Source: Zootoca vivipara (Eukaryota). From it: DNA of 64,000 nt. The notes under the pieces are model-generated. The model had not been told where the DNA came from and did not search any database. It saw only the letters and a list, made by a program, of their open reading frames with translations. This document shows, in pieces, positions 24,024-62,870 of the stretch. The stretch's first letter is position 1; each line of letters opens with the position of its first letter. The stretch spans positions 40,796,001 through 40,860,000 of the forward strand of contig NC_083288.1 in NCBI RefSeq assembly GCF_963506605.1, written 5' to 3'. The translations under genes were made by a program, and so were the position numbers.

Positions 24024-24464
24024 CTACATGAAATTGCTTTCTTCAAAATGGACAGGCCACCCCGATGCATCGCAACCTATGACAATGTGCCTTTGTCCCG
24101 TGTGGGCCCAGTAGCGGCACTGGCCCCGCAAAGTTCCCTGCAGCTTGCAGGTGGTGACAGATAACTGTGCCCTGCTGAGCCTCAGGGCCCGGCGGTAATG
24201 GGTCCCGCCACTGCTGCAGATGTCCTTCACGTCGCTCCTGGGCGCATGGACAAAGCTGTTGGTGTCTTTGCAAGGCCTCGTCATCCCCCGGCGCAGCATC
24301 ATGGCCCCACAGTAATCCTGCCCGGCCACATTGGTCCGGGGGAAGTCGTTGTGCTGCCTCAGGAACTTCTCGTGCCGAGGATTCTGCGAGGAGACGCGGC
24401 TTACGATCAGGCAGGAGGCCAACAGGAGCAGCAATAGCGCTTCGTTTCCTTTCAGGGAGGTCAT
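24024..24464 (-). CDS. RNase A superfamily / angiogenin-like ribonuclease (gene A), 146 aa
   Basis: Signal peptide; FLRQH, CKDTNSF, PVHF catalytic triad; 6 mature Cys; acceptor ctgcag at ~24489. Confidence 0.95.
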   Translation of the reverse strand: MTSLKGNEALLLLLLASCLIVSRVSSQNPRHEKFLRQHNDFPRTNVAGQDYCGAMMLRRGMTRPCKDTNSFVHAPRSDVKDICSSGGTHYRRALRLSRAQLSVTTCKLQGTLRGQCRYWAHTGQRHIVIGCDASGWPVHFEESNFM

Positions 24465-32246: not shown

Positions 32247-32678
32247 CTAAAGAGGCGTTTTGAAGTGAACCGGCACCCCGTTAGTGCAGCCCACCCGAAT
32301 GCGCTGGGAGGTGGACCTGCCTCTGTAGTTACAGGGGGGTCTCTGGGAGCCTCCCCCAACTATGCGGCAAGCAGTGATGTCAAAGGGTGTGTTGCTGTCA
32401 TAGTAATTCTCGCTGGAGTGGGTCCCCCCGTCACCGCAGATGGCATCCACAGCCATGGGGTCCCCATGGATGAAGGTGTTGGAAGGTTTGCAAACACTGT
32501 CAGTCATCCCCCGTCTCTGCATCATGAGGTTGCAATAGCGTCGGGCATCCAAGTCGCTTCTGGTCTTTGGGGAGTCCATGTGCTGCCGGTTGAATTTCTC
32601 GTGACGGGATTCCCTCTGGGTAAGCGCCGGCAAGACCATCAGGAATATCAGCAGCGAGCAAGCAGTCGTCTGAGCCAT
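32247..32678 (-). CDS. RNase A superfamily ribonuclease (gene B), reptile pancreatic-type, 143 aa
   Basis: accATGG start; FNRQH, CKPSNTF, PVHF; 6 mature Cys; resembles turtle/iguana RNases as recalled; AATAAA ~32076. Confidence 0.95.
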   Translation of the reverse strand: MAQTTACSLLIFLMVLPALTQRESRHEKFNRQHMDSPKTRSDLDARRYCNLMMQRRGMTDSVCKPSNTFIHGDPMAVDAICGDGGTHSSENYYDSNTPFDITACRIVGGGSQRPPCNYRGRSTSQRIRVGCTNGVPVHFKTPL

Positions 32679-38248: not shown

Positions 38249-38692
38249 TTACACTGTGACAATGATGCTTTCGTCAAAGTGCACAGGTTCTTTATTCTGA
38301 TTACAGGCAATGACGATGTATCTGGACGATTTGTTATCAGAATATTTGCAAGGTGGGCGAGTTGAGCCACCTTTGTGCTTGCAGGTGGTGACAGTGAAGG
38401 GGCGGAGGGCGATCCTCAGCCCGTTCCCGTAATCCTTTCCTCCAGATTCAGTGCACACAGCTTTGATGTTATTCATGGTGTCGTGGATGAAGGTGTTCAC
38501 GTCCTTGCATGGTCTGTCCAGCCCACGTCTTTTCATCATGACGTCACAATACTTATTTCCAACGCTGCTCTTGGGATAATCATAGTGCTGCTTTAGGAAT
38601 GTCTGATGGCTAGGTGCACAGTAGGCTCCCAGTGCCAGAACAGACACCAGAAAGGTGAGGAGCCCAAGGCCAGATCCCTTGAAAGGCATCAT
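38249..38692 (-). CDS. Angiogenin-like ribonuclease (gene C), 147 aa
   Basis: Signal peptide; FLKQHYD, KRRGL, CKDVNTFIH, PVHFDES; 6 mature Cys; acceptor tttcag at ~38709; ATTAAA ~38054. Confidence 0.95.
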   Translation of the reverse strand: MMPFKGSGLGLLTFLVSVLALGAYCAPSHQTFLKQHYDYPKSSVGNKYCDVMMKRRGLDRPCKDVNTFIHDTMNNIKAVCTESGGKDYGNGLRIALRPFTVTTCKHKGGSTRPPCKYSDNKSSRYIVIACNQNKEPVHFDESIIVTV

Positions 38693-57892: not shown

Positions 57893-58142
57893 CAGTCGTA
57901 CGTTGGAAGTTGAACGGAATCCATTCCGGAAGTCCATTTGACTTCCAAAATGTTTAGAAACAAAAGCACAGCTTCTGATTGGGTACAGGAAGCTCCTGTA
58001 GCCAATTGGAAGTCGCAAAAGCCCCGTTGGACGTTTGCGTTCCAAAGAACGTTCGCAAACCGGAACAGTCACTTCTGGGTTTGTGGCATTCGGCAGACAA
58101 AACTTCCAAGTTCCAGGGTGTTTGGGATCCACGGTATGACTG
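57893..58142. mobile_element. Tigger-type MITE
   Basis: TA|CAGTCGTAC...GTATGACTG|TA; absent from the paralog C intron. Confidence 0.85.
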
Positions 58143-58258
58143 TACTGTACAGTATTCATTTGAACTCCAAGCTGTTTCACAAAGTACCCTGAAAGAAAGC
58201 ATTTATACACCCACTTTCCTTTTCCCCCCAGATATCTCTTTCCAGTGGTGCCTTGAGG

Positions 58259-58735
58259 ATGCCTTTCAAGGGGTCTGGCCTTATGTTTCTCATCTCCCTG
58301 GTGTCTGTGCTGGTCCTGGGAGTCTATTGCCAAGCCGGCTATCAGAAGTTCGTTACCCAGCACTACGATAATCCCAAGAGCAGTGTCGGCAAGCAGTATT
58401 GTGACGTCATGATGAAAAGACGCGGGCTGGACAAACCAGCATGCAAGCAAGTGAACACCTTCATCCACGACACCAAGAAGAACATCATAGCTGTGTGCAC
58501 TGCATCTGGAGGGAAGGATTACGGGAAAGGGCTGAGGATCAGCCTCCGCCCCTTCACTGTCACCACCTGCAAGCTCAAAGGTGGCTCAAGTCGCCCACCT
58601 TGCAAATATTCTGATAACAAATCATCCAGATACATCGTCATTGCCTGCCAGGATGGGAAGCCTGTGCACTTTGATGAAGGCATCATTGTAAGAGAGGATT
58701 TTCAAGGCCCAGATAAAAAATGTTCAGCATTCTAA
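58259..58735 (+). CDS. Angiogenin-like ribonuclease (gene D), 158 aa, close inverted paralog of gene C
   Basis: Acceptor ttccag at 58245; FVTQHYD, KRRGL, CKQVNTFIH, PVHFDE; AATAAA at 58924. Confidence 0.95.
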   Translation: MPFKGSGLMFLISLVSVLVLGVYCQAGYQKFVTQHYDNPKSSVGKQYCDVMMKRRGLDKPACKQVNTFIHDTKKNIIAVCTASGGKDYGKGLRISLRPFTVTTCKLKGGSSRPPCKYSDNKSSRYIVIACQDGKPVHFDEGIIVREDFQGPDKKCSAF

Positions 58736-59170
58736 TGATCATGTTCACCTTCACTGAAAATGTTTGATTTCTTTAAAAGTTTCCAGTTCTAAAACTGAAC
58801 CAAAAAGAAATGTTTAACAGAGTCTTTGCTTATTGTTAATTACCTTGCTGATTTCCTGCATATGTATCTTTCCTGTGTCTGAGCCCTGAAAGCTCAAGGG
58901 TGTGTGTTTCTAATGCATGTGGAAATAAAAATGGCCTGCTTTAATCACCCGTATCCATACCTGGTTTTTTTTTTCATTTAGTCTTTTTATTTTATACATA
59001 AATACATACATCAAATATACAAAGAAATAGAATAAAAGCATACAAAGAAAAAAAGAAAAAAGCCTCAAAAACAAACATTTTCAAATACACTTCTATGTAG
59101 GGAGTGCAAAGCCATCTTTTTGGCTTGACTCCTTGATTCTTAACATGACTTCCCACTGCCCATGAACATA

Positions 59171-59507
59171 CAGTGGAACCTCGGTTTATGAACACCTTGG
59201 TTTGCGAATTTTCGGTTTACGAACGCCGCGGACCCATCTGGAACAGATTAATTCACTTTTCATTACTTTCAAAGGGAAAGTTCGCTTCAGTTTATGAATG
59301 CTTCAGTGTATGAACAGACTTCCGGAACCAATTACACCCATGCTTCGGGTTAAGTACGCTTCAGGTTGAGTACTCTGCGGACCCGTCTGGAACGGATTAA
59401 TCCACTTTCCATTACTTTCAATGGGAAAGTTCGCTTCAGTTTATGAATGCTTCCGTTTATGACCAGACTTCCGGAACCAATTGTGTTTATAAACCGAGGT
59501 ACCACTG
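59171..59507. mobile_element. Tigger-type MITE with 2 internal subunits
   Basis: Same family as 45715-46381. Confidence 0.9.
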
Positions 59508-60628
59508 TACTTAATAATTCCTTTTTCTCAAAATCTGTATTCAGTTGGTAAGTCTGTGGAGAAACATTCTGATTGCCAGTGGGATTTTAATCTACACTAA
59601 GCCAAGTGATGATCTGGGAATCTCCTCTATTCTTATAATTTATATATGATTCAGAGATTTCTGAACAAACAATGTTTATGCAGGGAAAATGTTTATTTTA
59701 GCAAAGTCAGAAAGGCCTGTAAACTCAGACATTGAGGACAATAAGCCACAACATACAAGAGCTATGTAGAAACTAGTTAACAAGAAAGGGACTTGAGGAC
59801 TTGGCCAACATGGTGGACTCAACTCAAAGGAACTCTTGAAATTCCCCAGGGTTTCTGGACCCTACCAGCTGTTGGTCTTAGATTACGAACACCCAGCCTT
59901 GGCTGGCGCCATCCTGCGTCTTCTGGAGCTCATTCTGCACTAAACTGTTGCATTGCGAAGTGCTCTAGTTCATTGATCTAGGAAATAAGTTGTTAGTTTA
60001 TGCTGAGTTGTTCAGCTGAGAAGTACCCCTAGTTTCTCAATGAAGTGGCCTCCTTTTCTGGGTACAATCCTTTAAACATAAACCAAGTCAGTTTGCTATG
60101 CATGCAGCAATAAATCAGGGAAATGCCCATAACCAAATATTCCATGTCTGCTTATCTGAGTCACAAGGTGGAAGAGTTAGAAAAGAGGCTGGGTTTTAAT
60201 AAGTGACCAGGGACACTGCAAATAACTGCTTTGTCCCACAGCAGCAAGAATCATGAGAAAAGGAATGAGATCACACTTATAATCTGCAAAGTGAGGTAGG
60301 AGATGAGCGGTGAGCCAAAGTGGAGGCCCAAAGTGATCAGAGTGGCCTTTTCACCCTCAAGAAGGAAGGAATCCTGGTGGGAATCCAATGGTGACTGTGA
60401 ACAGGTAAAATAGATTATGGGAAAGAATTAAGGAAATGGATTTCTTCAACTTCTCCTTCTTGCAGTCCTCTTGCCTTTGCCAAGACCTGCCCTGGAAGAT
60501 TGTAGGACTACCTTGAGAGGTTTCTTGGGAGGGATGCAGTGCAGGAGGGGGAAAGTGGAGGGGGCTCCTGAGTGTCGAAGAGGATGGTTTATTGCCTAAG
60601 CAGAAGTCTGCTTGTGGAACAATGACAT

Positions 60629-61018
60629 TCAGTATCTTAATTCAACTGGGTATCCATTCTCACATGAGAGGGAAATTTCCTTAGTTATGGCAAGACTGAT
60701 GTAGCTGTAAAAATGTTTAAAACACAGGGTGACTGGAACAGGAGATAAGCTCTGCATGGGACCAGTTACTGGTGTGCCAAAAAAAGTGCAGATTTCTTTA
60801 AGATCTTGGTCTGAGACATGAATGAAAGTATGTTCCATTCTGTTATTCAGACCCCTTTTCCTGAGTAAATAGTTGCAGTAATCTTTGACGTCAGTCCTCG
60901 GGTAATCGACATACTCGTCTTTGAAGGATTGGAAATCCCAGGAGGCTTCAGTCCCCAGCACCGTCCAGGAGAGCAAAACCAAGAATAGCCATAAAGGAGA
61001 GGGCCCCTTGGCAGCCAT
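60629..61018 (-). CDS. Divergent non-catalytic RNase A-like secreted protein (gene E), 129 aa
   Basis: gccATGG, signal peptide, F...VDYP..YCN...RGL...TFIH...IC...VTLC...CENGYPV skeleton; acceptor cacag at ~61046; AATAAA at 60593-60588. Confidence 0.85.
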   Translation of the reverse strand: MAAKGPSPLWLFLVLLSWTVLGTEASWDFQSFKDEYVDYPRTDVKDYCNYLLRKRGLNNRMEHTFIHVSDQDLKEICTFFGTPVTGPMQSLSPVPVTLCFKHFYSYISLAITKEISLSCENGYPVELRY

Positions 61019-61267
61019 GGCTCTCTGTGGCTCTTGGTGTTTGTTCTGTGCAGAAAAAGCAGGAAACGATGTAAAGTTCAACAGAGCATTATCATACTTT
61101 CCCTTTTCCCACCAGATTTATTATATAACCCACTTCCTAGGAAATATCAAGGAGAAATCTGAAAAGGGCTATGACAGCCTTGCTCAAATTGTAATCCTAA
61201 TTTCCTCATTAGGTAGTTATGAGGCTGCCTAATACTGCAACCAGACACTGCCCCATCTACTTCAGTA

Positions 61268-61516
61268 CAGTGGTGCCCCAGAAGTCAAACGGAATCCGTT
61301 CCAGAACTCCATTCAACTTTCAAAACGTTCGGAAACCAAGATATGGCTTTTGATTGGCTGCAGGAAGCTCCTACAGCCAATTGGAAGCCACAGAAGTTGT
61401 GTCGTACTTTTGGGTTCCGAAGAACGTTTGGAAACCCAAACACTCACTTCTGGATTTGCAGCATTCAGGACCCAAAATGTTTGACTCGCAAGGCGTTTGG
61501 GACCAAGGTACGACTG
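61268..61516. mobile_element. Tigger-type MITE
   Basis: TA-flanked; same insertion as 50146-50394. Confidence 0.85.
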
Positions 61517-62870
61517 TATCAGGCATCCCCTTTCTTCCTCCACCCCATTATAACCAAGAAACTACAGTGTAGTTAGACAGATAGATTTAAGAAAGAGATA
61601 AAACTCAGTTCCAGAGACTAATAAGCACCTCAAAAATCACACAAAAATTGGCCTCTGCAAAGACAACAAATCACACCATTATTCTTCATGTCACCACAGC
61701 AGAAATAAACAGGAGTGAGTTCCCCAAATTAGCACACTGAGATTCAAGACATTACTTCCCAAACTGTTAACCTTAGTCAGAGTGTTGTGGCTTCCTCAGG
61801 CAGCTAATTCTGGTTGTCATGAAATAATAGCAATTTATTGATTTTTGCCATTGCATTTTTATTGCCAGAAATAAGGAACAGTGTTTGACTCCCAGGGCAG
61901 CTTACGTACAACCAGTTGAAAACATGTTAGTCCCTACTCGCAGGCTGAAGATTGTAATGAAACAAAAGGAAAAAGGAATGAGTGGAGAGGAAAAAAGTCA
62001 AACAGAAGGACTAAGAAATTCATGAAAAAAATTTCAAGTCAGCCCCTCCTTTTTCTTTGAGACATCACAATGTTGAGCATCTACTTTCATTTCTTCCTCC
62101 AAAAGTTAAACAAATCCTGCACATAGCAATATTTAAATTCTGGAGAAAGCATTGTAACCTAAATGTCAACATGGCTATTACATACAGTCATCTTATCAGC
62201 ATTCTGTACTTTGAGTTGATGCAGCCAATCCACAGCTCTGCCACCACATTTATTGTCGGAGAGCTTGTGCTCAAAGATGATTGGCTGCAAGTGAAATGCA
62301 GGTAAAGAATATAGCTGCCATGTCTAGAACTTGGGAGAAGGAGTCACACAAAGGTTAAATATTTATTCACAAAAATGAATATCTGCTTACAAAAAATAAA
62401 TTCCCAGGGAGAGCATACAATGAGAAAAGTGTTTTTAAACGTGGAAAGGTTTACTCTATCAAAGACAGAAGAAATTTGAAATCAGGTATGGAAGAAAACA
62501 AATGACAGACAAAGCTTTTTAGATAAGCAAGGCCAGGCCTTTTTCTTACCTAGTGTAATAGAAATTTGATCCACTCCCAAAGAGTGGATCAAAATATCTT
62601 CTTTCATTCGTATGCGCCTCTGAGGATCCTTCAGGAAGAGACACCTTATATACAGAGAATTCAGCTATGGTGGGTGGTGATATATGGAAAATTGTTACTG
62701 GATGTCCTGGAACAAAAGCAGGAAGCATATTTTTTTCCCTGTAAGAGATGGAAATGAAGCAACATTACTGGAAAAACATGAAGGTCTACTTGCTAAAAGG
62801 TTCTGAATGTTATAGTAGTTCCCCACTATTGTTGTACTGGAAGGATGCATTCTGTACCGAACAGGTTGAT

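Follow-up and report, generated by a model that had tools for sequence, protein, structure and literature searches.

The RNase A superfamily is defined by a signal peptide and a single coding exon of about 130 codons (PMC3845642). Its canonical members, RNase A and the angiogenins, carry the catalytic triad His12/Lys41/His119, the CKxxNTF signature and between six and eight conserved cysteines joined in three or four disulfides, and are strongly basic. In mammals, the non-canonical RNases 9-13 are secreted proteins of the RNase A fold which lack the full triad and are presumed to be non-enzymatic (PMC3845642). In squamates, a family of related sequences, whose cDNAs were obtained from oral glands, has been discussed as an oral-gland or 'venom' ribonuclease; ribonucleases of snake venoms had earlier been suggested as a source of free purines, and no orthologs were found in seven further gland transcriptomes from toxicoferans (Hargreaves et al., bioRxiv 10.1101/006031). 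'Cysteine-pattern changes' are mentioned in a 2026 review. We propose that the gene described here represents, in lacertids, an ancient squamate family of secreted proteins with the RNase A fold, one that had lost the Cys40-Cys95 disulfide with its two loops, Lys41 and His119 by the time of the common ancestor of the sampled squamates, a reading to which we assign a probability of roughly 0.6.

The gene lies on the minus strand of the window, by which we mean the whole 64,000-nt stretch of Zootoca vivipara DNA that was analysed. Its open reading frame runs from 61018 to 60629, with 129 codons and a TGA stop, uninterrupted and in a single coding exon, and the start codon has the context gccATGG. 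Together with an N-terminus that is hydrophobic, as judged from the sequence and the family alignment, these 129 uninterrupted codons agree with the one-exon definition of the superfamily. The parts of the gene are the following.

60629..61018, minus strand: complete coding sequence of an RNase A-like protein, by frame and homology.
60944..61018, minus strand: putative signal peptide, residues 1-25 (MAAKG..., hydrophobic core, ...TEA), with a predicted cleavage site before mature Ser26.
61046..61066, minus strand: candidate 3' splice site (pyrimidine tract and CAG), with the AG at 61047-61046, 27 nt 5' of the ATG.
61117..61127, minus strand: TATA-like TATATAATAAA, about 100 nt upstream of the ATG.
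60588..60593, minus strand: AATAAA poly(A) signal, 35 nt past the stop.

The clean frame, Kozak context, splice acceptor and poly(A) signal reported in the preliminary description were thus all located between 60588 and 61066, the acceptor as a candidate, and the signal peptide that it had claimed corresponds to a MAAKG-type N-terminus, which aligns with that of a squamate four-cysteine clade and is characteristic of its members. The TATA-like element could possibly serve as an alternative, unspliced promoter. The region is single copy according to k-mer depth.

A tblastn search of the window with the protein revealed four further RNase A genes, which form one cluster with it.

24024-24464, minus strand: intact canonical RNase A/angiogenin-like gene.
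32247-32678, minus strand: intact canonical RNase A/angiogenin-like gene.
38249-38692, minus strand: intact canonical RNase A/angiogenin-like gene (w38).
58259-58735, plus strand: intact canonical RNase A/angiogenin-like gene (w58).

These four paralogs have the full triad, with QH, CK..NTF and PVH, at least six cysteines and a predicted mature pI of 9.2-9.8, and they are 28-32% identical to the focal protein. An acceptor-like site with the identical spacing of 27 nt precedes w58 and w38; no upstream homology that could place a 5' exon was found between the focal gene and the canonical paralogs. The w58 copy bears a C-terminal extension of about 14 residues that contains a seventh cysteine. 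Lying on opposite strands, the focal gene and w58 are convergently oriented, and two inverted copies of a high-copy interspersed element (61281-61518 and 57906-58144, 75% identical over 239 nt) flank the pair. A very high-copy repeat occupies window positions 59000-59600, with a summed k-mer depth of up to 10^6 in WGS contigs; it has 16-nt internal tandem repeats and abundant RNA-seq reads with many 'goes back' joints, and represents a family of transcribed repeats that has no relation to the RNase genes.

The homology of the protein is clear. In a phmmer search of all PDB chains, the best match was the turtle egg-white RNase 2ZPO (E = 2e-8), followed by dozens of angiogenins, and a phmmer search of 1.8 billion proteins gave E = 3e-18, so that the resemblance is not due to chance; the relatives of the protein carry the Pfam domain PF00074 of the RNase A superfamily. 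AlphaFold2, run on a 17-sequence family alignment, returned a mean pLDDT of 91.7, with values of 96-98 across the mature domain, and the top Foldseek matches of this model were 2ZPO and angiogenins, with TM-scores of 0.67-0.77. The protein is therefore predicted to adopt the RNase A domain fold, in agreement with the RNase-like nature first attributed to it. It shares with 2ZPO, human angiogenin 1ANG and the paralogs of the window this fold, a length of about 130 residues, a single coding exon, a signal peptide and the equivalents of the Cys26-84 and Cys58-110 disulfides. The canonical hallmarks are in contrast all missing, and the protein is left with two disulfides and a mature form that is acidic, with a predicted pI of 5.8. 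Alignment with the four canonical paralogs and 2ZPO gives the following residue equivalences, the cysteine pairings being those expected by homology.

60911..60913, minus strand: codon of Tyr36 at the His12 position (DEY instead of QH).
60839..60841, minus strand: codon of Arg60 in the Lys41 column, the three preceding residues, including Cys40, being deleted.
60641..60643, minus strand: codon of Glu126 at the His119 position (PVE), Glu being the commonest residue of the family there.
60875..60877, minus strand: codon of Cys48, equivalent of RNase A Cys26, probable partner of Cys99.
60722..60724, minus strand: codon of Cys99, equivalent of Cys84.
60788..60790, minus strand: codon of Cys77, equivalent of Cys58, probable partner of Cys119.
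60662..60664, minus strand: codon of Cys119, equivalent of Cys110.

None of the triad residues is present, Tyr36, Arg60 and Glu126 standing in their place, and the protein has four cysteines. The CKxxNTF signature is reduced to RMEHTF, its cysteine being deleted, and a six-residue deletion takes out the Cys95 loop, so that the Cys40/Cys95 pair is missing. The preliminary description had counted all three catalytic positions as lost, which holds insofar as all are replaced, although the Lys41 column is not simply gone but holds Arg60; it had also described four remaining cysteines, one lost disulfide pair and shortened loops, as is borne out by the absence of Cys40 and Cys95 and by the deletions of three and six residues. 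Most of the stability of RNase A comes from its two terminal disulfides, and folding studies of des[40-95] RNase A and of the C40A/C95A variant have established that the native fold is stable without the 40-95 disulfide. Those laboratory variants keep the triad and the loops, whereas the protein described here has lost both.

An exhaustive HMMER search of 1.84 billion representatives with the focal protein yielded 57 matches. The top matches share a MAAKG..LW..W.V.(E)TEA signal peptide, four cysteines and both loop deletions, and lack the CK motif and His119. They are 33-42% identical to the focal protein, the range over the relatives as a whole being 32-42%, and the nearest is the 'ribonuclease-like' protein of the amphisbaenian Rhineura floridana (42%). 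The relatives further include proteins of the iguanian Sceloporus undulatus, of Thamnophis sirtalis ('angiogenin-like'), of Laticauda and Ophiophagus, and of the geckos Sphaerodactylus and Gekko kuhli (two proteins), in addition to cDNA-derived sequences: RNase-Cwar1 of Caribicus/Celestus warreni, RNase-Ginf1-5 of Gerrhonotus infernalis, and the 'ribonuclease' of Psammophis mossambicus and Erythrolamprus (Liophis) poecilogyrus. The oral-gland 'RNase' cDNAs of Fry and co-workers, from anguimorph lizards (Gerrhonotus, Celestus/Caribicus) and colubrid snakes (Psammophis, Liophis), fall in the same clade as the focal protein. The RNase-Ginf/Cwar clade is like it in the type of signal peptide, the four cysteines, the two loop deletions and the absence of CK and of His119; its members differ in that most retain His12 and are basic, whereas the focal protein has Tyr, is acidic and comes from a lacertid, outside Toxicofera. 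A word-index protein search was far narrower: the focal protein retrieved a single match, a chimeric Podarcis muralis model discussed below, and the family alignment retrieved five proteins only.

In a maximum-likelihood tree of 53 proteins, the focal protein lies inside a 16-member squamate clade with a support of 99/96, and it remains in the squamate clade (100/97) when more outgroups are added. A control tree was calculated on the mature sequences, without the signal peptide and with the three catalytic columns and both loop regions masked. With koala RNase 12 included, it grouped the focal protein with 14 of the 16 members and with the long-branch koala sequence; without koala RNase 12, all 16 were grouped, with a support of 98. 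Within the family, the His119 column holds Glu in seven of 15 members and His in none of them, and the residues in the Lys41 column vary (L, I, Y, G, K, M, Q or R). The His12 column still holds His in most members, with Asn, Ser or Tyr in several; Tyr is also found there in one gecko protein of the family. The mature pI ranges from 4.7 to 9.2, most members being basic and the focal one acidic. It follows that the losses of the Cys40-Cys95 disulfide, of Lys41 and of His119 predate the split of the sampled squamate lineages and are ancestral to the family, and that the change of His12 to Tyr is the only one specific to the focal lineage. The gene is a new, unannotated lacertid member of a squamate family that has already been sequenced. 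The preliminary description had argued from the reciprocal loss and the open frame to a fold maintained by selection; that argument gains from the sharing of the losses across Squamata, their conservation by descent being strong evidence for the selection of a folded, non-enzymatic secreted protein, but the losses are neither novel nor specific to lacertids.

We propose that the pre-protein enters the secretory pathway by means of its signal peptide, and that the mature protein folds as an RNase A-type alpha+beta domain held by the two terminal disulfides, presumably 48-99 and 77-119. As the general acid/base pair is absent, it would act by binding rather than by cutting RNA, and the mild acidity of the mature protein makes RNA an unlikely ligand. 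The likeliest setting would be an exocrine secretion with expression in a narrow range of tissues, possibly an oral gland by analogy with the relatives. The fast evolution of the squamate family, no member of which is more than 42% identical to the focal protein, fits a role at the interface with other organisms or with conspecifics. Overall, it seems rather probable that the gene encodes a functional, narrowly expressed, non-enzymatic secreted protein.

Several lines of evidence bear on whether the locus is still in use. Of 36 positions shared by 60% or more of the other members, the focal protein retains 30, the family spanning 57-87%, which speaks against any decay of the protein. Against a leave-one-out family HMM its score is 137.7 bits, which ranks fifth of 15 and exceeds those of the cDNA-derived Ginf1 and Cwar1, and its branch in the 53-protein tree is of ordinary length. 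In a neutral simulation (ts/tv of 3; 0.12 indels per substitution; 80% of indels frameshifting), about 6% of the frames were still open after 5% divergence, and 0.3% after 10%. This low survival points to coding constraint through nearly all of the history of the gene.

The most serious competitor is that the gene belongs to the same family but was recently silenced, or released from selection, in the focal lineage, and that its frame has not yet been broken. We regard this as possible but the less probable of the two, and the evidence is divided. A frame of this length would outlast a few percent of neutral divergence. Over positions 60,401-61,200, no RNA-seq read was found in two runs of the species (2026; tissue not given) among about 7.5 million reads from each run, 6% of each; the canonical neighbour w58 received a few reads, at about 1x depth in one of the two runs. 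The focal sequence was found in none of the indexed runs recorded as RNA, and its words were absent from five probable RNA assemblies of the species. With no expression in the RNA data examined, function at this locus is something that we infer. For the relatives, expression has been recorded in oral glands only, tissues that the runs examined here probably did not cover, and this weakens the case for silencing.

The comparison with a second genome that carries this species label (X6) is similarly divided. It differs from window positions 60336-61339 at 13 of 1004 bases, about 1.3%, and the divergence is no lower in the coding sequence (6/390) than in the flanks (5-7/614), as would be expected of a released gene. 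The six listed coding differences lean towards constraint, with four synonymous and two non-synonymous (S7P and Q89R; two contig differences are unlisted), a 4:2 split that falls short of significance when the neutral model allows transitions only (P = 0.11). Another run (X3) is identical to the window over 60336-61339, and the species label hence spans fairly divergent lineages.

No lacertid ortholog annotated as a protein was found in the collections searched, in which the canonical P. raffonei and P. muralis neighbours are present, and the proteomics of lacertid femoral glands records no more than a peptide of the canonical angiogenin type. Among the P. muralis models, a focal-type N-terminus occurs only in P0001 (UniProt A0A670KCI5), in which 30 of 35 N-terminal residues are identical to those encoded at window positions 60914-61018 (minus strand); these are joined to a w58-like body (93% identical), and the His12-Cys26 segment is missing. 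Since the focal gene and w58 lie on opposite strands here, this model looks like an annotation chimera or artefact, or else reflects a rearrangement.

The additional loss of the equivalents of His12 and Asn44 could likewise be taken as a sign of relaxed selection, but both are also replaced in other intact members, such as the gecko protein P0023. The start, the stop position, the signals and all four cysteines are intact, and the retention of the consensus and the HMM score, both among the best of the family, speak against a relic. We retain the reading of a conserved secreted protein, the silenced gene being a tentative second.

It is very improbable that the protein is still an enzyme, acting through His63, His67, His102 and Arg60 on RNA or on another phosphodiester. 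Several histidines and an arginine do lie near the former active-site strands, and snake-venom ribonucleases have been proposed to make free purines, the squamate family being counted as a venom component. Both general acid/base histidine positions are nevertheless replaced, the family conserves neither the Lys41 column nor, in any of the 15 members, a histidine at position 119, and the mature protein is acidic when compared with the canonical paralogs. That a duplicate of a neighbouring canonical gene underwent a reciprocal loss recently and in lacertids only, as was implicit in the preliminary description, can be practically set aside: the gene does cluster with four canonical paralogs, but its identity to them is low, upstream homology is absent, and the tree contradicts such an origin by grouping it with gecko, snake, anguimorph, iguanian and amphisbaenian four-cysteine proteins.

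With the conserved squamate family as the preferred reading, its relation to other non-catalytic RNases can be considered. The gene had been likened to a squamate analogue of mammalian RNASE9-13, and the analogy is a fair one, as both are triad-less secreted proteins of the RNase A fold; orthology is a separate matter. The only mammalian non-canonical match was the marsupial 'probable inactive ribonuclease-like protein 12', which retains Cys40-Lys41 and Cys95, unlike the focal protein. Koala RNase 12 (P0036) is 44% identical over 62 residues to focal residues 30-85, including the stretch FKDEY(I/V)DYP. We considered shared ancestry as the source of this FKDEY.DYP motif and rejected it, the Tyr being specific to the koala among six marsupials; since the five others have His at position 12, the DEY match between the koala and focal proteins is convergent. 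A word-index search with koala RNase 12 retrieved marsupial orthologs only, and marsupial RNase 12 is a clade by itself (100/100). Joining RNase 12 to the squamate clade was neither supported nor rejected (AU p = 0.33 and 0.22) in a sample in which RNase 12 stood for the mammalian non-canonical RNases.

Turtles possess a comparable four-cysteine clade ('ribonuclease-like' proteins of Mauremys, Pelodiscus, Chelonia and Chelydra), which is like the focal protein in lacking Cys40, Cys95 and His119. It differs in its signal peptide, in the retention of His12 and of NTFIH, and in its C-terminal PVLY or PVYY. In the tree it is separate (99/95), and its union with the squamate clade was not rejected (AU p = 0.32). 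This expanded clade, which is the turtles' own, consists of P0012, P0013, P0015, P0026, P0030, P0037, P0038, P0040, P0042, P0044, P0050, P0052 and P0056. It can be speculated, as a doubtful extension, that the squamate and turtle four-cysteine proteins, and perhaps mammalian RNase 12, go back to a single ancient lineage of amniote RNase A-fold proteins devoid of catalysis. If so, one conserved pseudoenzyme of great age, presumably with a binding partner, would take the place of several enzyme losses that happened independently.

For the locus itself the stakes are modest, since its contribution is one more member, unannotated and from a lacertid, of a sequenced family. The family bears more directly on the debate over Toxicofera. 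Its occurrence in geckos, lacertids and amphisbaenians indicates that the 'venom ribonuclease', which has been counted among the toxins common to Toxicofera, predates that group, and a protein devoid of the catalytic machinery cannot generate purines by RNA cleavage; that the oral-gland 'ribonuclease' is a two-disulfide, triad-less and squamate-wide protein thus argues against an RNA-degrading or purine-generating role in venom. The family also represents a natural case of a fold that tolerates the loss of exactly the Cys40-Cys95 bridge, and it offers a natural parallel to mammalian RNases 9-13 for the use of the RNase A scaffold after catalysis.
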